A stretch of 63,285 nt of DNA, filler included, from Guillardia theta CCMP2712 (taxonomy: Eukaryota; Protista; Cryptophyta), in the NCBI RefSeq assembly GCF_000315625.1. It is 3 parts of 3 records of this genome, joined end to end, with 100 filler letters (N's around TTAATTAATTAA, not from the genome) between each part and the next. Parts side by side here need not be neighbours in the genome. Positions count along the whole stretch, not along the records: positions 54,242 to 63,285 come from NW_005434432.1; 2 more parts are not named here. One strand, written 5' to 3'. A program made the position numbers and the translations under genes. Shown one piece after another: positions 9,184-63,285 of the stretch; position 1 is the stretch's first letter; every line of letters begins with the position of its first letter. The notes below the pieces were generated by a model. The model had not been told where the DNA came from and searched no databases. It was given only the letters and a program-made list of their open reading frames with translations.

Positions 9184-12119
9184 TTAGATTCGTACTTGGC
9201 ACGTATGCAAGTTTACCTTGCTGCGGATGTGGTTTGATGGAGACGCTTCTTCTTGCAAGGAAACTGCAACAAGGCGTTGTTTGAGATCCTCCAACTTGCT
9301 GCAATCTTGATCTGAGCAGCACAGAGCAAGCATGCCCCTTGTCCTGGCCAGATCGAGTCACGTCAAGAGCACCACCAATGCGCTACACTCACTCCAGCAG
9401 ACTCACAAAAGCTTCAAGCCTGGAAATGAGCGCTGTCTCCTCCCCTGCTGCTTCCATAAGTCAGCATCAGCTGTGAACGGAATGTAAACCTCCGATCATG
9501 TTCATCGCCTCCAGCAGAATTCCAGGATTCGACTTGGCAGCTTCCGCTGCCACTTGTACAGATCCTCTCAACTTAGACTGGAGTAGACTCAGCATGGCCT
9601 CAGCTATCGTTCTTCGCTCCTCCTCCCCTTCCTCATTTGCTTCACTGCCTGCGCCATCGAATCTCTGAACCATAAGATGGAGAGCCGTCCGAAGACGATG
9701 AGGGTCTGTCTCTTCCTTGAGCATTCTCATCAAAAATGGACTGAGTAGCCTACGCAGAAAACGTCGAATCTTCATTCTGCTCATCCGCTTGGTCACAATC
9801 TCGACCCGCTGCCAGTCTCCCTCGGAACCCGACTCCTTGTCTTCGATATTCATCGCTACCGTGAGAAGAAAGCTCAACACGCTCTCTACTGGTTGAATGC
9901 TGCTGTCTGACAAAGCACACAACACATCGACTGCATACGCCATGACAGGAGGTGAAACTTCGGGGAGAACAAGGACATCGGAAAGTGCTGCCAGCATCTT
10001 ATCTGTGAGGGGTGCGAGGTAGTAGAGGAGTTCCAACGCAGCTGTCTGACAAGAGGCAGGAAGGCTTACAAAAGGCCCAGCCTGCATTTCACTGGCCCTC
10101 ATCTGAGCACGAAAGAAGGGAACGAGCAGTTGCTGAAGAGTGGCTCCTCCTCCGCACATTGTCTGGGCCGAAACGGAATGCTTCCCCTCGCCTGATACTC
10201 TCCTTGCCAACTTGCCGAGCAGGAGCAGGCAGTCCAGCGAGAGCTGGGGGTCGCGATCCTGAAGGGTCCAAAGCAGCTTTGGCAGCGCAGCGATCCAGCG
10301 GCTGGCATGAGGAGGAAAGGAGGTGGGCCATGTCTCCAGCTGCTGTGCAATGAAAGAGAGTCCAGCTCGCTTGAATGAGGAACGACTCTGCGACGCCTCC
10401 CAGCAAGAGGTGAAGCAGTCAAGAAGATCCTGCTCTACCGCTCGCTCTCTCCCTTCCATGCCGAGATACAAAACCTCATGTGAAGCATTTCGAACCAGCA
10501 GAAGCGAAACGGATGGGAGAAGCTCAGCTGCTGTCTCTGCTATTGCCTTGACAGTGGAGGGTGAAGGCAACGGATCTGCTCCTCCTCGCTTGCCACTGGC
10601 AGCTCGCGTTGATTTTGTCAGCACGATCCTCAGCTGCTCGAATTCATGTAGAGAGAAATTCAGCAAGTCCTGACGCATGTGGAAGTTACCACGTGAGATG
10701 AGGTCACAAGACAAGCAAGTCGTTGCGACAGACAGGATGGCACGGTTGAGAAACTTCAGCTCAGTTTGTGAGGCTGCTAGCAAATCCTCAGCTGCAAGAG
10801 GAAACTTGACAAGGAGCGAACCGACCGCTGAACCCACTTGACACTTGACAAGCTGCCATGGAGCCATCTTGGTCGGCACTTGTAGACGAATCTCTTGCAA
10901 GCAGCTGGCAGCTAACTGGAAAGTCCGAACCACCTGGATAGCTGAGCTGACAAGGCAGCGCGAGACGCGCGAGTCCGCAGCAGAAGAAGGGGACTGCAGA
11001 CTCTCCTTCCAGATCTGCTCCAAGAGAGGGAGAGAAGAGGAAAAGAAGCCCAGCAGCATGTAAGCACCCTCATGTTCCCTTGGCTTCTCATGCCTATGCC
11101 ATGAACACTCTCCCAGTCTCACAATGTTATACTCTTCTTCTCTCCATTCCAGCTCCCCTCCTGTCTCGTCCTGGTTCTTCTTTGGTTCTGAAGAAACTCG
11201 ACCTGCATCACCTCCTCCCTCCTTCGAGCTCCTTGGATCGGCTTGTTCTTTGCTAACGAGCTCAAAGAAAGAGCTCGCAGGCGGCCGACCCTCGAAGTTG
11301 GTCAAGGCAACAGCACACAAGAAGGCGTGCATGCGCTCAAGGATGAAGAGTCGATCTCTTGGTGAGATCGTCCGTAACCTCGGTGCTGACGACAGCAATC
11401 TCAGAGCGTCCTTTCTAGAGGAGGAGGAGGCGACGCTGATACCTCCTGCCACTTCCACTCCGCTCAGCATGTGGATGAAAATGGGGAGCAGCTGGGCAGA
11501 CAGCTGGCAAACTACCTTGGGATACTTGGGAACGAGGTCGTGAAGGAGCTCTAGAGCTGAGCTTCGGATCGACTCACTAATGTGTGAGAGTCCTCCACAC
11601 ACGTGAATTAGGTAGGCGTTGAGGTAGGGAGCTAGCACGCCTTCCTGCGCCTGACAGAGGACCAGGTTCATGAGCGAGCGAAGCTCTCCTCGCACCGCCG
11701 CATCTGCATCCGAGACCATCGATGAGATTCTGTCCAGCACAACTCCAACGTGCGAGGAAAGCAGCGAAGGATGGAGAGAGAAAAAATCCTTCACTCCCGC
11801 CACACATTCCTTCCTGACATTGGCACTGTAGTGCGAGGCGTGAGAAAGAACGTCGGCTAGCGTTAAGCCCCTGCTGTTGACTTCCTTGCCGCTCCTGTCC
11901 ACCGCAACTGACTGTCGAACAAGATTCAGCTTCTTTGATTGAATCGTTGTGCTCGTCTCATTCTCTTTCACAAGCTTTCGCCCTAACTTAACCTAAAATC
12001 CGTAAGTTCGTATTGTTCTCAAGGAGACGACGTACTTTCTTCTTCTTGAAGTCTGCAGGCTGCTTGTTCTTTGCTTTACCCTTACCCTTCTTCTTCTTGA
12101 TCCCCTGCAGGTCCGGCAT
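9184..12119 (-). CDS. TEX10: Pre-rRNA processing Rix1-complex subunit TEX10/IPI1 (3' end approximate)
   Basis: After removing intron 11993-12035 the N-terminus reads KQPADFKKKK|VKLGRKL..NETSTTIQSKKL, then LSHASHYSANVRKE and ..LSHISESIR..ALELL (Ipi1_N pattern). The body is HEAT-like. Confidence 0.85.
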
Positions 12120-54241: not shown

Positions 54242-56673
54242 CTATACCGCTGATAGGTGGCGGCGCGTTTGCGAGCCAGGACCTCAGCAGCAGGGCCGTC
54301 ATCAGGCACGAAGTGCCGACCAAACGCCGCATCCTCAAGAGGCATCGAGCGCTGAGCAATGATGTCCGCGAGATACCAGATGAAGCGGAGGGTGTCAGGA
54401 TGCAGGGTACCGTCCGTCGAGATGGCAAGAGATAGCGGATTTACTGGCAGAAGGTAAAAAGTGCCTCAAGCAGAACAAAGCAGGAACAAGCTAAACCTCC
54501 AGGCACACAGCGCACAGCGAGAAGCTGCGAAGAGGGATGAACGCTCGAGGAGGAGGAGTCATAGCATATGCAGCGCGATGTTTGCGAATCTTCTCAGACG
54601 CTGCAACATGGAGGGCGTCGAGGTTGACCTCCCCCCACTTGGTCAGGTCGGCAGAGCTACCAATGTAAGGGTGGACCAACAAGCCTCGTACTGCTCGGAC
54701 CCTCGATCGCGGATTCCAGGGATGTGGATATCGCCCTTCATCTTGCGGCCATGAGGATGGGAGGGTACCTGCCGTCGAGAACGAGGATCCCCCACTGTAT
54801 CGATGACGCTCTGAAGACCAGCTTCGTTCAGCATCGACCGAATCGTACGAGTCACTAAGGTTGTCATGCGCCGTGGGAAGCTTGGAGGATCGGCGTTTGC
54901 AGGTCTGGAGATGATGTGCAGCAACGGAGGGATCGAGCTCGCGCTGACATCCATCACATTTCGTCGGACACTGGCAGATCGGCATGCCATGGAGATAGCA
55001 GTCGAGCATCTGAGCATAGCGGTGCGGGAAGGCCTTGAGGGGGTAGTAGCTCGAGACTCACATCGGAGAGTGGCTCAGGTCACGCTCAGGAAAATGAGCG
55101 AAGATGGTAGACTGCAAGACCCTATCCTGCGACTTGAGCGAGGTTATAGGATTTACTGGCAGAAGGTAAAAAGTGCCTCAAGCAAAGCGAGTGTGTCCTG
55201 CGGCTGTGCAAGGTGAGGATATCACGCTGCTGATCGGTCAGCGCAGCGCGAGCATGCACATGGCGAGGGAAGACGCGCATGACAAGAGGAGTCACATTTT
55301 GCTGCGCAGGGGGAGGAATGAAGTGCTCATGAGACGAGGTAGATATAGGATTTACTGGCAGAAGGTAAAAAGTGCCTCAAGCAAAACAAAGCAGGAACAA
55401 GCTGAACCGGCAGGCACACAGTCCACAGCGAGACGAGTCGACGAGAGCGCGCAAACCAGGGATGTGTACCACAGATGCCGGGGGGCGTCCTGCGTCATCA
55501 GGCACAGCAGCCGGGGCAGGTGCCAGTAAATCCTAAGTCCTCCGGATCGCCGCGCCATCTGCAGCCGGTGCAGGAGCCCTCACACGACGGTAGAGGATCG
55601 CAATCGCTCCAGCATTATGAACGAAGTATAGGATTTACTGGCAGAAGGTAAAAAGTGCCTCAAGCAAAACAAAGCAGGAACAAGCTGAACCGGCAGGCAC
55701 ACAGTCCACAGCGAGAAGCTGCACAATCACACACAAAACACAAGCCCGAAATCTTAACCAGCACTGCTGGCACCCAGACGCGGCAGCGCCAGCCCAAGCG
55801 CGAAGCCGCGCAGACAAGCAGCCTAAGGGCAAAGCAATCAAGCAACAAGCAGCAGGAGCATGCAGGAGGAATAAAATCCCTAACGTCCAGGCTATGAGGA
55901 GAGGTCAGCGTCCGGGACATGGGCTGGTCAGAGTACCAAGCGAGGAAGCGAGCGATAGCCGTATAGTAAACAGCGGGGTGTAGACCCTCAGAGGGCGTGA
56001 ACTCGTCCCCTCCCCGACTATGCGGAAGCTCCCGCTTGAACCTCGCAAACTCTAGCAGGTCGGGATGCGCGGCGAGGTACTGCGAGGAAGGCCAGCGGTG
56101 GTATTTCTCAAGCGCCAGGTGGACAGAGAGGTCAAGCTTCTGGAGATGGAGCCGCGTCTTGAACATGAAGCCATGCTGGACGAGCCCGAGCTTCGAGAGC
56201 TCTTCGTTGAGGTTAGAAACCTTCGCTCGGAGCTCACTAGCATGAAATCCATCCGTGCCGATAGGCAGGCCGCCAAGTGTAATCCCGCCAGTGACGACCT
56301 CGAAGTGAAGAAGTTGAGTCTTGAGACGGCGCTTAAGGCTCTTCTTCAGCTGCGAGAGATCAGGGTGTTGATGCCAGGAGGGGATGTAAACTTTCGACTC
56401 GCGAGGTTGAATCTCTAGCTTCAGATCAGCTAACATGTACTTCTTCATAGCGGACGTAGCTGCAACGGCATCCTCGAGTGGACCGACAAGCACGACGTTG
56501 TCAGCATAGGCCAAGACTCGAACAGAGGGAAAAAGCTCTGCGATATGGAGGAGCAGGGGGTGGATACTGTGGCAGAAAAATACGCTGGAGGGGACATCGC
56601 CCTGACAGACGCCCGAGGTACACTGAACGGAGGCTGACTGACATACCGGGCAGTTTCCCACCGCTCCCGGCAC
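54242..56673 (-). mobile_element. Cluster of nested/truncated CRE-clade (RLE-type) non-LTR retrotransposon fragments
   Basis: RT motifs SGVCQGD..F and VLAYADNVVLVGP. Zn-knuckle CDGC..HHLQTC..H. RLE-like KMKGDI..VHP..AASEK..KH..FIPL. Four same-orientation copies of the same 3' terminus. Confidence 0.82.
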
Positions 56674-57190
56674 CTCATTAGTAGTTCATCAATTGGGGTA
56701 CCTTCTTTGATGGGGGTGGGCTGCCTGGTTTGAATTTTTGTACCAGAAATGATTTTTGAGTAATTACATAAAAGTTGTTTTTGAGAGATTTTAGGATGTA
56801 TATATGGTACAAAAGCTCCTGGCAACCCCTCTGAATGACCCGGATCCTGAGCACCCCTCNNNNNNNNNNNNNNNNNNNNNNNNNNNNNNNNNNNNNNNNN
56901 NNNNNNNNNNNNNNNNNNNNNNNNNNNNNNNNNNNNNNNNNNNNNNNNNNNNNNNNNNNCATCCCCCGCCCCTCCAACCATCCCCCTCACCTCCAACCAT
57001 CCCCCTCCCCTCCAACCATCCCCCGGCGCCCCTCCGAGTCCAACCATCCCCCGCCCCTCCAACCAATCCCCCGTCCCTCCAACCATCCCCNNNNNNNNNN
57101 NNNNNNNNNNNNNNNNNNNNNNNNNNNNNNNNNNNNNNNNNNNNNNNNNNNNNNNNNNNNNNNNNNNNNNNNNNNNNNNNNNNNNNNNNN

Positions 57191-58301
57191 CAGAAGGGTA
57201 ACGCTAGTGATGGATGATGACGGGGAAACTCGGAAGCTTGAGAGAGATTGTGTACCTCAAATGATCAAAATCCCTTTTTTCTTCTCTCGGATGTTATTTC
57301 AGGAAGACACTGACGCTCCTCAACTTGTGCTTTGTGGTAGTAGAGAATCGCAAAAGCGCGAATTTCTAAAACCAAGTATGGGAATCTCGTTCTTGGACGT
57401 CAACAAACAACTCCGGCATGGTATGATACGAAAAGTAACCGAGAGTCATGTAGATGTTTACATTCTTTACACCAAGGATGTATTGAGACAAGTACAAACC
57501 AATGTCTTGAGTGGAGCTCGCTTGACGCAATTCATCTCTAGCCTTGATGATCATGAGTGCTTGCAGAGCATCTACACGGACCAAGTTCCATTGCAAGACA
57601 TTCAGGAAACTGTATTGCTGAACTATGCCCAATTCTCTGTAAGGACTATGCGGTGCAATAGCTTACTGATCGTTGGGTGGTTGTACTTCGGAATGCCAGG
57701 ACGCAAAAGTCAAGAATGTCAATTTTCTTACTTCAATACCATGACGGTTTTACCCCAGCAACTGAAAAACTTTGTCGATGTCACTCTTCTGCTTCAACTT
57801 ACAAATACCATTGAACTTCACTGGGAATTGGAATCGATCAGACGCAGTTTGAACAAGTGGCTGCAGCTGAGAGGAAAACCAAAGACTCGTTGTCTTGCTG
57901 CAGCAAAAGAAGCTCCCTTGAGATTCAATGTGGAGATACAGGATATGCGTGCAATGCTGTTCCTTTTTTCTGAGATTATGCAAACCGATCCCAATCTTGA
58001 AGCAGAGGCAATTAAGTGTTCCACTGTTAGCAAAAGTAGCCTGGTAACATGCTATTGGGTAATTCCTGAGACATATCTAAGAACCTCTGTTTTGCAAAAG
58101 CACTTGACTATACCCTTTCATGATTCACAACTACGGTTGCCAAATGGGACTGGTAGTATTTACGTGGAGGGGCCTGTGACAATCAGCTTACGAAGACAGA
58201 AAACTGCTAATGAGGCTGGGTTGCTCATTTTCAGATTTTCTAAGATCTATCGTTACGGCTGGACTGGAAAAGAAATGTGGAGGTTTCCTCCTCTCAAATA
58301 G
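57191..58301 (+). CDS. Transposon partner protein with BAH-like domain (5' end probably lost in gap)
   Basis: ~370 open codons. FLKPSMGISFLD..HGMIRKV..VDVYILYT..DDHECLQSIYTDQVPLQDIQETVLL fits the BAH pattern. Confidence 0.55.
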
Positions 58302-58391
58302 TTTGTTTATAGCGGCCGGCTTACCAAGTCCATTTCAAGAGTCGTGGCAAGCTCATCCGCGCCAAAGATAGCACAGAAATAAAATTTTCAT

Positions 58392-60908
58392 TTATGTACT
58401 ATTCAAAACCACTTGTAATTGTTTTGCTTTGCGTTCTAAATTGAACCAACTTACCATGCTCAGCGATGCTAAGGCGTAGTAAGACCAGGCTGCTTGGCGC
58501 GACTCCATCAAAGGTTCATGTTCTCCTTCACGGCGACGTTTCTTTGAGACGAATGCATTCACCTCTGGTTGGACTTGAAGATATGAAGGTCTTCCAAAAT
58601 GTCTGTGGCGATTCTCGACGTTACTAATGTTCAGTAATCCAAGAGGGATCCCATATTGTACCAAACGGTCGTAGAATTGTTGGCCAATGTGCCCAACAAG
58701 GAGCGAGTGGAAGTAGAATGACTGCATCAAAGTAGGATCTCCAACCAGATCGATAATGTTGAGCATGAGATTTCTCAATCTTACTGGAACGGTCAAACCG
58801 ATTTCAAAATTCAGGTTTTCAATTTTTTCAATTTCTTGACACTTCAGCATGCTGCTTAGCAAGTCCCATTCTTGCATTACTTGAGTCCATTGTTCTCTGT
58901 CATCTGCATAGGCAGGATCGCTGTAAAGGGTATTGATAACCACTGCGGCATTTTTGACGAATCGGGCACATTGTTCCCCGTTCAATTTTCTATTATGAGA
59001 CTTCTCAGTGAATTGCACATTCACTCCTTGCTCTTGTAATCGAAGGTTGACTGTCGCGACCTTTCTCATCTGCGCCGCTTTCTCTTGGAGGCAACCAATA
59101 ATCATGTTCGTCGTTCTTATGAAAGCATGAAACGAGCAACAAGCTGCTTCGCCGCTGCATCTGTCCATTTCAATGAGACGAATCACTGGGATCTTTGTTC
59201 CAATTTCCATGATCAATTCTGGGTCTTGCAGATAATTTTGCAGTCGAGTCTGATTTTCTTCAGCTAATAACTCTTGGAATTCTCCTTCCGAGGTATCGAA
59301 CATTCGTTGGAAAGCATCGGGACTTTTCAACATTCTGTTTAATTTCTTGATGCCCTCGGTAGACATGACTAGTCTTTCACACACTTGGGACAGAGTTTCG
59401 TCGCAAACGATTGTTTCGATTTCGAAATATTTGCCAGCCTTGTGATCTTTTAGGAGTTCGTTACAGTGGAGACAGAACTTACCCTCATTGTCGGACATTC
59501 CACCAATGCCGTACATATTCCATTGCCCTTGCAAATCAGATCTCTTGACGAACTCCACTTGGATAATCTTGTCAGGCTTACCACCTGCTAAAGTCTTTTG
59601 AAGTCCCCCGACTGCTTGATTGTTGTAGACGTGAATACCTTTCTCCTTCAAGAGATCAATAACTTGATCATATGCAGCTCTCACAGTCCTCTGAAAAACC
59701 TCAGGACTGTCTCCATATGGAATGTAGGACATCGTCATAAGGCATGATGAACTTCGGACAAGCTTTTGCCAGAATTTCCATTCTTTCTTCGAACAGTCTA
59801 CGCCGTAAGGGAAAATGGAAATGGTGACTTCAGTTGCCTTCTGAGGATTGCCAGCCGAGAAAGTCATTGTTGCACAGTCATAGTTGATCGTGATAACAAG
59901 GCGATGCTTCCCGTGAAGTTTGAAGATATCAATCCACTCTTCGACAAGTTGAAGGAGGCCGAGACAATGTGTCCCATCTGGCAAACAGAACAGTTTGAAT
60001 CTTTCGCACATCGCATGCTTCTCTTGTACTCTAACCCGTGATATTTTTGGCATTGGAATAAAGCAGCCAGCCATGCTATCGTTTGCACGACAGAATCCTT
60101 GGTACTGCGATTTCGTTATACCGTTTGCTGTCAGGGCAACTGCTGCCTCTCGCGCGCTCGGCATCATTTGCCTGACCGCAGGTTTCAGGCAGTTTTGAAG
60201 CTCCTTATTCGTGGCAAGTTCATTTTTTATGACTGTCTTGAAGGCTTGACTGCTCAGAATGCCTTCAAAGAACGTAAGGCTATCGTATTTCGAAGTTTTG
60301 CACTTCTTCTGCTTTCGAGGCCCCTCGGCCGCTTCCTGTCCAGAGTCATCCTCACACTGGTGGTGAAATAGATCAGCAAAATGTCCCCATTTCACTCGAC
60401 AATTGGCCTTGTGTGACGCAAAGTGCCGATCTACCTTCTTCGTGACCACATCTAGAAGGTCCTCATCAGTGTCACCCTGGATCTTCTTCAGAATCGCTGT
60501 TTTCACTTTTGGATCTTTGATAGAATCGTAACAAGCCGGAATTGGTTCATCAGAGTCGGAAATAATCCCTTCGCGTATGGCTTCATCCACATGATGACTA
60601 AAACCTCTCTGCTCCTCATACTCTTGTAAGATTCGAAGCAACAACTCAGGAGATCTACCTGCATCTCAGGTGTTACAAAGATTTGAATTATACAAATAAT
60701 CTCTTTTCAAACCTATGGCCTTCAGGCAAGCATTGACATTAGGTTGTCCTTGCCATTTTCCTTGTTTATAGAGGAAGCCCGCTCGACTTGCCAGAGACTC
60801 CCAGGTGAGCAATTCATCGTCTTCCAGGGTGATCGTTTGTTTGCGACGTCTGCACGAACTTCCTTGCAAAGGTGGGGATGACGGATTTGATAGATTTGGT
60901 CCTGACAT
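58392..60908 (-). CDS. RAG1/Transib-like DDE transposase, 820 aa, one 54-nt intron (60659-60712)
   Basis: Motifs in RAG1 order: ITKSQY, ITINYD, FVKRSD, FCLHC, FHAFIR, LNGEQCARF, FYFHSLLVGH, GIPLG..NVENRH. The GT-AG intron joins ORF 60666-60908 in frame. Confidence 0.8.
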
Positions 60909-61470
60909 GGTTAATCAATGTTTTAATGTTCAAAATGCCAGGCCAAATTTCAAGATCCCACTGACATGTCTCTCAACTTGTGCCGTGGCGACTGGCCTGT
61001 GGAAAAAATTCAAATCCCTGAAATAGGGATGGGTGGGGAACAGGGGGGACTACCCTACCCCCTATTTGTGAAAGCACTAGCAGAAAAGGACCCGGTGACT
61101 TCATTCTTGTACTAAACCCAGAAACACAGTACACAATGAATTTGAATCAGGCACAAAATATTTTCGAACCTTAGTATTGAATTTCTAAGTCTTTTCTACT
61201 GTGTTTCCAATTTATATTTATTTTATGATTATCCGTATCCTTCTAAAACGTTTTCGCAGCCTTAAAACATGTCGTCTGTTAAAAGTTTCGAGGGGAGTGG
61301 GGTGGTCTTGAAGGTTACCGCCCATGACAATTCAAATACCCCACCCCCTATTACTAGATGATAATGGGGGTAAAAGGGTGCTTCTGTGCGAGGGTAAGTA
61401 CCCGTATATGAGCAGTCAAAAGTACCGGTCATTGAAAGCGCTAATCAGTAATCCTGGAATTTCATATACC

Positions 61471-63285
61471 GGTGCAGCCCCCTGAATCCCAATATGCGGC
61501 GCCCGCTTTGTGGCGGCAGCGGACGTCTCGACTGACAGTGGTCAGTCGGCTGCCTCCGGGTATCGCGTGCTCGCAAGAGGGCAAGCTTGCGCCTTCAGTG
61601 ATGCTCCCATCAAAGTAGTCGCGACTCGCACGTCCCTCGATTGCATCGAAGAGAGCCTGGCGGTCGAGGGAGTTGAAGGCGTTCTTTGCATCCAAACTCA
61701 CCAGCACTGTGGGGTTGGCAACATCCTCATCATCACCGCGAGCGTGAAGGGGCAGGAGCGCTGACGCGGTTTGCGAGAACTTCAGACAGCCGTCTCGATC
61801 GAGTCCGAACTGAATCGCTCGAGGGTGAGACGAGAGGAAGTGCTGGTCAAGAAATGAGCGAATCGCTGCCAAAGCAAGCTTCGTCGCGAGTCGACGGTGT
61901 GCAGAACCGATGACAATTGGCCGGAGACCAGGTTTATCAGCTCCCTTGGAGAGGGGAATAAATCTGCCTCCTCGACGAATGGCTGACAGGGCAGGAATAA
62001 GAAGATCCGGCATCCGGCCAAGAAGGACCCCTTGGAGGATATGTTTGCAGTAGAGCTTCAAAGCTGCAGGATGACTAGAAAGGGGTGACAGGTGTTGCCG
62101 AATCCTCCACCCTTGGTCATCGGTCCCCGCAAAGGAGCTGTAGCGCTTGATTGCCTGGATCAGGCTAGTGGTGTCGAGGATGTCAGTCAAATCCACCTGC
62201 AGTACTGCAAGCGCTTGCTGGGTGAGATGATCCGCGGAAGCACTTCCAAAGGCAGGCGACGCACCATCAGGGAACTTCTCTTGTGCTTCAGCAAGAAGAT
62301 CAGCGAAAGATTCAGCCCTGTAGATGCCGGAGCTCAGTAGTGTCCGTACCGCCCGATGAAGGTCACCCGCAGTGAACTGATGAATCGCCAACTGTCTTTG
62401 GCGCTCGCTCGCAGAGGTGAGGGACAGTGCGAATGTCCTGCCTGACGAGGATGATCAACCTGACCTTGCTGATGCCGACCCTGATTCTGCTACGGATGTG
62501 CCCCCGGTTCCACCTATGGCGACCTCAGATTGGCCGAAGGGCTTGCAGTGGTTGATGTCCAACCTCCGAGTCTTCCTCTATATTCATGAGCGCTTTCGTC
62601 CTCATGTCACTGCGTCTCACCTGTTTGGTGAGACTGCAGAGCTTTGGCTGACTTGTCTTGTGTCTTTGCTGCAATTCATCGATCGATATGATCCTTCCTC
62701 GTCCAGCTATCAGACCCTTGTTCTGCTCTTTGAGCACCTTCCCGCCTTACTGCTTCCCGTACCCAACTCTGCCAATGGTCCTACTACCAAGGACGCTATT
62801 ATCAAGCGCCAGTGCCGACGTTTCTTGAAGGGTGAATGGAAAGCTCTTTTCAAGCGCTATCTGCCTGCCATGATGGGAAGAGAGAGCAGGAGGAATAGTG
62901 GATTTACTGGCAGAAGGTAAAAAGTGCCTCAAGCAAAACAAAGCAGGATCAAGCTAAACCTCCAGGCACACAGCGCACAGCGAGAAGCTGCACAATCACA
63001 CACAAAACACAAGCCCGAAAAGAACCAGCAGACCCGGCACCGCCAGCCCAAGCGCGAAGCCGCGCAGACAAGCAGCCTAAGGGTCAGGCAATCAAGCAAC
63101 AAGCAGCAGGAGCATGAAGGAGGAATAAAATCCCTTAGACGCGATACCCGGAGGCAGCCGACTGACCACGGGCGGCCGCGGATGGAGAAAGGGCAGCCGC
63201 CGACAAGGAGCCGGCGTTGCCCGGGGGTCCGCCTGGGGCAGCGGACGGAGGGAGGCTGGACACAGGAACACGGTACCGCTCGAGG
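61471..63285. mobile_element. Scrambled CRE-clade retrotransposon pieces in alternating orientation
   Basis: Minus 61570-62410: FIPLSK..GLRPIVIG..RRL..QFGL..SLDAKNAFNSLDR (RT N-half). Plus 62417-62870: pre-RT region LPALLL..RRFLKGEW. Minus 62900-63285: ORF end (..GYRV*) and 3' UTR. Confidence 0.82.

Follow-up and report, generated by a model that had tools for sequence, protein, structure and literature searches.

Transposition by Transib elements and by RAG has a 5-bp target-site duplication as its hallmark, and Transib ends consist of a CACAATG-like heptamer with an invariant CAC (C at position 3), plus a nonamer (PMC1131882). An active RAG1L/RAG2L transposon has been described in the pelagophyte Aureococcus, and Transib-like proteins are present in bacteria, fungi, plants and ctenophores (Tao et al., 2022; PMC9435367). 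Given these pelagophyte, plant, fungal and bacterial cases, the statement in a first-pass annotation of the DNA studied here that such enzymes are known mainly from animals is out of date. The ancestry of RAG1 has so far been traced via Transib and RAGL found by sequence similarity, and the family described here is invisible to such searches. It was encountered in a stretch of 63,285 nucleotides from Guillardia theta CCMP2712, hereafter called the window. Positions 56642-61496 of the window very likely represent an autonomous cut-and-paste DNA transposon with two genes; this transposon, part of a cryptophyte nuclear genome, is probably still active. Its first gene encodes a DDE transposase of predicted RAG1/Transib architecture, for which D256, D370 and E677 are proposed as catalytic residues.

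Predicted fold and catalytic residues

Residues are numbered on the 750-aa track open reading frame (ORF) of the transposase; the numbering of the spliced protein is obtained by adding 70. A single-sequence AlphaFold2 model was unusable, with a predicted local distance difference test score (pLDDT) of 34.6. With an alignment of 13 sequences, all of them cryptophyte, the model reached a pLDDT of 77.8 and a predicted template modelling score of 0.71, residues ~160-700 being mostly above 80. When this model was compared with the PDB by Foldseek, as the first-pass annotation had proposed, the best 49 matches were all RAG1, HzTransib or amphioxus BbRAGL (E 2e-9 to 2e-5), and the next one was Hermes at E 0.014. 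An exhaustive, Foldseek-independent scan of 48,161 PDB representatives led to the identical ranking. VIA-align superimposed 417-436 residues on RAG1, RAGL and HzTransib at ~4 Å with Z between 18 and 19.7 (RAG1 18-19.7; BbRAGL 18; HzTransib 6pqx_A 19.6, with 417/480 residues), model residues 159-745 being aligned to residues 459-1008 of mouse RAG1 and 21-477 of HzTransib. The scores of the P element (11.7), ISCth4 (9.1) and Hermes (8.6) were lower. All parts of the RAG1 core architecture are found in the model, i.e., the dimerization and DNA-binding domain, the pre-RNase H domain, an RNase H domain split by a large helical insertion and the C-terminal domain. Retroviral integrase cores (from residue 57) also align to model residues 249-750, which corresponds to the split RNase H fold, and as integrase residue 57 falls on residue 249, D64 of the HIV integrase lies near model residue 256. 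Searches with language-model features returned the RAG1_RNase_H, RAG1_ZnC2 and RAG1_ZnH2 clusters as neighbours, both for the window protein and for P0013, a family member only 21% identical to it.

The residues which the first-pass annotation had singled out (D256, D370, C391, C394, H646, H652 and E677) were all found at these positions. They are more than chance likenesses, as they are invariant or nearly so among homologues that share only 21-45% identity. The invariant positions of the alignment are D256, D312, D370, C391, C394, C503, H506, R510, Y644, H646, G651 and H652. In the model the placement of D256, D370 and E677 is standard for a DDE triad on an RNase H fold, and the CxxC ~20 residues after the second aspartate together with the histidine pair shortly before the glutamate forms a candidate C2H2 zinc site. 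Counted in residues, the arrangement is D, 114, D, 21, CxxC, 252, Hx5H, 25, E. The order in RAG1 is D600, D708, C727, C730, H937, H942 and E962, and the order in the cryptophyte transposase matches it. The histidine pair of the latter is, however, one residue further apart than H937-x4-H942 of RAG1. Model and conservation together support a RAG1/Transib-fold DDE enzyme with the predicted triad and zinc ligands. An RNase H fold with the residues placed as expected is predicted, and none of the sequence and structure searches grouped the protein inside another described superfamily.

Gene structure, expression and sequence relatives

The transposase gene is encoded on the minus strand by an ORF of 750 aa (58392..60644) and an upstream ORF of 80 aa (60666..60908). 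Removal of a 54-nt GT...AG intron with an in-frame TGA (60659-60712) results in a two-exon coding sequence of 2463 nt, which specifies 820 aa and a stop codon, so that the intron and the 820-aa ORF claimed earlier were borne out by the reconstruction. Exon 1 encodes the motif L..LA...GF.Y..G.W.GQ.NV...L.A.G, which is common to P0022, P0013, P0015, P0030 and P0031 and is thereby kept in paralogues of 21-45% identity. The G. theta gene model of the 45%-identical paralogue P0022 (locus L003) contains a 56-nt GT-AG intron at the matching relative position. In L001, a metagenome copy of 95% identity, a single nucleotide is deleted from the intron, and the exon indels comprise only 3, 3, 9 and 3 nt, all multiples of 3. 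For the window transposase, no full-length gene model is present in protein collections.

Contigs of four public sequencing runs were aligned to positions 56400-61800. A contig of run X6, which is probably RNA (this assignment of the run is only a guess), omits exactly the 54 nt of the intron (CT..AC ends on the plus strand, depth 480), and contigs of two DNA-type runs are uninterrupted across it. Runs X6 and X7 cover 58.4-60.7 kb deeply, and their depth falls almost to zero at 60.9-61.5 kb; such a confinement to the gene is the pattern expected of a transcript. Family members are transcribed and present in the MMETSP and Hanusia phi transcriptome sets.

As judged by sequence, the family stands alone and has so far been met with only in cryptophytes. 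Searched with the window protein at E up to 10, Pfam yielded no match to the RAG1/Transib models (PF12940, PF26100, PF26101, PF26104) or to any other transposase model including Transposase_21. A phmmer search of PDB sequences yielded nothing, and the profile of the 13-member family retrieved neither RAG1 nor Transib from them. Among 1.84 billion representative proteins phmmer found 21 matches, all of them cryptophyte or metagenome relatives, with RAG1 and Transib being absent. The named matches are hypothetical proteins of G. theta CCMP2712 (e.g., GUITHDRAFT_110778, _162260, _149260, _107925 and _142617) or Hanusia phi transcripts, the remainder being metagenome proteins. No Pfam domains were found in these relatives, and tblastn against phage records returned nothing. 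That a family invisible to sequence searches is yet predicted to keep the whole RAG1 core suggests that the RAG1-fold clade is wider and more varied than catalogues indicate. In Pfam, residues 540-628 (58761-59027) of the transposase weakly resemble DUF1062, a bacterial family without known function (E 0.0086, 17 bits, cut-off 23); the resemblance may be due to chance or may hint at bacterial relatives.

Element ends, copies and selection

The element is present at several different loci, and the search for further genomic copies suggested in the first-pass annotation disclosed multiple loci in four subfamilies. Its 5′ boundary is evident from L001, L002 (a 3′-truncated copy in the G. theta assembly) and contigs of runs X1 and X6, all of which diverge from the window at 61496/61497 into unrelated flanks. 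At the 3′ boundary the last 130 nt are colinear with the ends of L003 and L004, finishing with CTGCCCGGTATG at 56642, where contigs of the surrounding retroelement family also stop matching; the flank of the copy L011 differs after CCCGGTAGG. The subfamily of 45% identity includes three independent copies (L003 in the G. theta assembly, L004/L006 and L005) of exactly 4612-4630 bp in unrelated flanks, all of which begin with CATATTGGTC and finish with GACCG(A/G)TATG (for L003, CATATTGGTC/CATATCGGTC). The start CATATTGG is shared between the window and this subfamily (L003-L006), and the window has the same 3′ terminal repeat as L004 and L005 (their CCGGTATG end). A third subfamily (L012) starts with CATTCTGGGG and has 24-nt inverted ends, CATTCTGGGGTC...CCCCAGAATG, around both genes. 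Across these subfamilies the ends share CAT...ATG. The element region has a GC content of 42-46%, and its flanks, which contain reverse-transcriptase-like ORFs, one of 53-59%. The C-rich repeats of the window have G-rich repeats in L001 and L011 as homologues.

For the P0013 subfamily (L008/L009) no element ends were found within its colinearity of more than 10 kb. These two copies (G. theta JH993271.1 and JH993240.1) lie in colinear blocks of more than 10 kb and 98-99.7% identity, which also hold a protein-kinase gene with a repetitive N-terminus and ~332-bp tandem repeats. They may have arisen by segmental duplication, represent haplotigs or belong to a larger composite element.

In the window copy the transposase ORF is open, and so is the second gene (ORF2) as far as the gap shows. 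Other copies are decayed. In L001 codon 539 is a premature stop and ~520 bp of ORF2 are missing, and L011 lacks 60657-59531 and carries frameshifts in ORF2. Both genes have been under purifying selection. The ratio of nonsynonymous to synonymous divergence (dN/dS) of the transposase between the window and L001 is 0.18 at a dS of 0.075, and this low value implies that most of the divergence accrued in functional lineages. Copies, selection and transcripts are compatible with a family whose activity is recent or still continuing. The earlier suggestion of an intact and possibly active element is likewise supported by these sequence-level signs of recent mobility and expression, in a cryptophyte whose closest named relatives are G. 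theta CCMP2712 and Hanusia phi.

The run contigs also revealed other copies with a deletion of 414 nt in ORF2 (57485-57900), an in-frame replacement of 51 nt by 6 in the transposase (59976-60028) and a 109-nt deletion in the 5′ non-coding part (61147-61257), which indicates that the family includes deletion derivatives. The truncated copy L002 ends at 10960-11003 in an A-run and three GGGTTTA repeats, which are telomere-like, ~7.5 kb from the scaffold end.

The second gene

ORF2 and the transposase gene are arranged tail to tail inside one pair of inverted ends, with the stop codons at 58301 (plus strand) and 58392 (minus strand). The same layout occurs in L003-L007, L008/L009 and L012, and thereby in all four subfamilies. 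ORF2 is 52% identical to the equally placed and oriented ORF of L003-L007, 30% to that of L012 and 24% to that of L008/L009, a divergence which parallels that of the transposase. Compared with the decayed copy L011 its dN/dS is 0.22. Neither Pfam nor PDB nor Atlas searches produced a match, including any kelch, PHD or RAG2 signal, no homologue was found outside these elements, and a self-comparison with hhalign detected no internal repeats. When residues 159-750 of the transposase were modelled in complex with ORF2 (ESMFold2), ORF2 was poorly folded, and the prediction gives no verdict on binding either way. ORF2 (~420-440 aa) is probably a lineage-specific accessory protein which co-evolves with the transposase. 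It may serve as a cofactor, as RAG2 does, or instead bind the element ends or act as a regulator. The ORF2 homologue of L012 (8702-9877, G. theta JH992983.1), located downstream of GUITHDRAFT_162260, is unannotated in the public assembly.

Target sites

Insertion of the element leaves no target-site duplication. The clearest case is L003, both flanks of which are contiguous in L002 at 97-98% identity and thus provide the exact empty site. Its sequence is CTCCAT^TGTGAT, and that of the filled site CTCCAT, CATATTGG...CGATATG, TGTGAT (flank, element, flank), with 0 bp duplicated and boundaries that cannot be shifted. Neither the window copy nor L004 or L005 is bordered by a direct repeat of at least 3 bp, and in L012 only a GTG, perhaps coincidental, flanks the element on either side. 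Between anchors 56642 and 61568, 71 letters are found in other copies of the host retroelement; in the window this interval consists of 71 nt (61497-61567) and the element, which agrees with the absence of a duplication, though the two sets of 71 letters differ in sequence. A candidate 4-bp GCCG duplication at an empty site near 61500 was rejected, as its loose ends are the inverted arm of the retroelement at 63139-63178.

Relationship to Transib, RAG and other transposases

With Transib (HzTransib, PDB 6PQX/6PQN) the cryptophyte element shares the predicted architecture, the DDE and C2H2-type zinc motif, a length of 4-5 kb and a short intron. Its ends are likewise of the CA...TG type, CATATTG agreeing with CACAATG at 5/7 positions. 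However, the heptamer-like end has T at position 3, where Transib and recombination signal sequences (RSS) have C. No CAC heptamer was found at the ends of the window copy (CATATTGGGA/CATACCGGGC), L003 or L012, and no 5-bp duplication was seen at the L003, window, L004, L005 and L012 copies. Moreover, there is no detectable sequence similarity to Transib, the conserved second gene is absent there, and the spacer between the zinc half-sites is longer in the cryptophyte family (252 residues). RAG1 and RAGL (ProtoRAG and the RAGL of Aureococcus anophagefferens) are the best structural matches and resemble the element in the convergent two-gene layout, which is also that of ProtoRAG and the vertebrate RAG locus, and in the unicellular algal host. 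Unlike RAGL elements, the cryptophyte element has ends without a CAC heptamer and a second conserved RSS-like element and causes no 5-bp duplication. The N-terminal RING or zinc-finger region of RAG1 was not detected by Pfam in the cryptophyte transposase. Spy elements, PIF/Harbinger-related DNA transposons, are said to insert into AAA^TTT targets without target-site duplication. They thus share this absence with the cryptophyte element, but their transposase belongs to another superfamily, and no AAA^TTT-like target preference was seen here.

Several of these observations weigh against a transposon of the RAG1/Transib kind. Homology to RAG1 and Transib rests on predicted structure and language-model features, with no link by sequence or profile, and RAG1 structures were part of the training of AlphaFold2. 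The hallmarks of Transib elements are missing, as there is neither a CAC heptamer nor a 5-bp duplication, and the element is not single-gene. The absence of a duplication in turn rests on one clean empty site and four flank pairs, of which two are metagenomic and possibly chimeric.

Could the transposase then belong to another DDE superfamily that lacks a solved structure (e.g., CACTA/Mirage/Chapaev, or a KDZ-like one), its RAG1 likeness consisting of a shared RNase H fold, a helical insertion and a zinc motif? An Atlas shape search, in which unannotated fungal and rotifer clusters ranked highest, returned a plant Transposase_21 (CACTA) cluster (TM-scores 0.50/0.39, 459 residues aligned) beside Transib, RAG1 and unannotated cnidarian clusters, and as this CACTA row has a similar TM-score the alternative was retained. 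Two-gene elements are typical of CACTA and PIF/Harbinger, and the layout shared with CACTA/En-Spm (CMC), a distant structural neighbour in the Atlas, counts in the same direction, as does the fact that ends and duplication state are unlike Transib. Yet the Pfam searches, including Transposase_21, gave no match, the element has neither CACTA termini nor a 2-3-bp duplication, and the named language-model neighbours comprise RAG1/Transib families and one DUF1280-annotated fungal cluster, with no CACTA, hAT or P among them. Furthermore, the order and spacing of the motifs (D, ~20 residues, CxxC; LNGxxxxRF; YFHxxxxGH; E ~25 on) agree specifically with those of RAG1. Altogether another DDE superfamily appears unlikely.

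Two further explanations are considerably less probable. The dN/dS of ~0.2 for both genes and the location of L008 and L009 in colinear blocks of more than 10 kb and 99% identity, together with a kinase gene, would also fit a domesticated recombinase and its partner, i.e., host genes multiplied by segmental duplication and not a transposon. This is very improbable in view of discrete units of 4.6-4.9 kb with inverted CAT...ATG ends, unrelated flanks, often inside other repeats, and one precise empty site, and also of copies with premature stops, frameshifts and internal deletions. An artefactual fold, with the ORF encoding an unrelated protein, might be suspected from the failure of the single-sequence model and from the small, purely cryptophyte alignment. 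We consider it equally improbable, as confidence is high over residues 160-700, two divergent members both lead to the RAG1 family in the independent language-model search, conserved residues occupy exactly those positions that were predicted to be catalytic or zinc-binding, and retroviral integrase cores align to the split RNase H core as well.

A transposon with a RAG1/Transib-architecture transposase hence remains the preferred reading. The lineage claim of the first-pass annotation holds insofar as a RAG1/Transib-fold DDE enzyme is predicted; it does not extend to Transib proper, to which there is no sequence or profile link and from which ends, duplication and second gene differ. The enzyme is best described as functioning like a RAG1/Transib transposase rather than as a proven member of the Transib superfamily, two of whose defining features at the level of the element were looked for and are absent. 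The family is a distinct lineage, characterized by the lack of sequence similarity, CAT-type ends, insertion without target-site duplication and a conserved partner gene. The occurrence of RAG-like and Transib elements beyond the Metazoa is not new, but the divergent cryptophyte lineage appears unreported. Neither Guillardia nor any cryptophyte appears in the text and supplement of Tao et al. (2022; PMC9435367), and no publication joining Guillardia with Transib or RAG1 was found in a search that did not cover Repbase reports.

By analogy with RAG and HzTransib, the transposase would bind the short CAT...ATG inverted ends, nick at the border between element and flank and form hairpins on the flanking DNA, whereby a blunt-ended element would be released and subsequently inserted. 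The lack of a target-site duplication suggests either that strand transfer occurs without a stagger or that the excised fragment is captured by host end-joining. Tentatively, the family may even constitute an undescribed RAG1-fold lineage of superfamily rank, so far found only in cryptophytes, with unstaggered integration and with ORF2 as an obligatory partner which is analogous to RAG2 or possibly a divergent homologue of it. If this is true and the lineage branches outside Transib plus RAG1, it would provide an outgroup for the evolution of the RAG1 core, the partner protein and end recognition. The family would also serve as a natural experiment to tell ancestral from lineage-specific properties of RAG, namely heptamer recognition, the 5-bp stagger and the requirement for a second subunit. 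As the window copy is intact, it is directly testable.

Feature coordinates and the flanking retroelement

Table 1. Features of the transposon and of its flanks, by position in the window.
Feature	Position	Strand	Remarks
Whole transposon	56642..61496	-	~4.85 kb including two 100-N assembly gaps; minus strand 5'-CATATTGGGATTC ... CTGCCCGGTATG-3'
5' terminal inverted repeat	61487..61496	-	CATATTGGGA
3' terminal inverted repeat	56642..56651	-	...GCCCGGTATG (reverse complement CATACCGGGC)
Transposase exon 1	60713..60908	-	ATG at 60908; conserved N-terminal motif
Intron, GT-AG, 54 nt	60659..60712	-	Joint in X6 contig; intron in paralogue at equal relative position
Transposase exon 2	58392..60658	-	Predicted RAG1-like core, track-ORF residues ~159-745 (AlphaFold2, Foldseek, VIA-align)
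D256 codon (spliced D326), first catalytic Asp candidate	59877..59879	-	7/7 sequences; end of predicted strand beta1 (248-258)
D370 codon (spliced D440), second catalytic Asp candidate	59535..59537	-	8/8 sequences; just after predicted beta4 (359-368)
C391-x2-C394, ZnC2-like	59463..59474	-	C391 8/8, C394 9/9; 21 residues past D370
H646-x5-H652, ZnH2-like (YFHSLLVGH)	58689..58709	-	Both His 9/9
E677 codon (spliced E747), catalytic Glu candidate	58614..58616	-	7/8 sequences; opens helix 674-699
ORF2	57191..58301	+	Convergent with transposase, stop codons 90 bp apart; N-terminus in N gap 57091-57190
C-rich 19-20-nt repeats (CCCCTCCAACCATCCCC)	56960..57090	.	Between the two assembly gaps, ORF2 upstream region; repeat family D3
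Flanking retroelement, reverse-transcriptase part	55660..56641	-	QGD and YADN motifs; weak RVT_1, E 0.0017; very high contig depth
Flanking retroelement, upstream reverse-transcriptase part	61497..62391	-	LDAKNAFNS motif

The transposon sits inside a very high-copy retroelement (55627-56641 and 61497-63178), for which a contig depth of ~92,000 was recorded in run X2. This retroelement has direct repeats at 55627-55881 and 62896-63135, which are 94-95% identical, and a 40-nt inverted repeat at 61529-61568 and 63139-63178, a repeat layout that recalls DIRS-like elements. Five copies of a 42-nt motif (TA..GGATTTACTGGCAGAAGGTAAAAAGTGCCTCAAGCA.A), some of them forming inverted pairs (D2, I2, I7, I8), are spread over the flanks (54433-55668 and 62896-62937).

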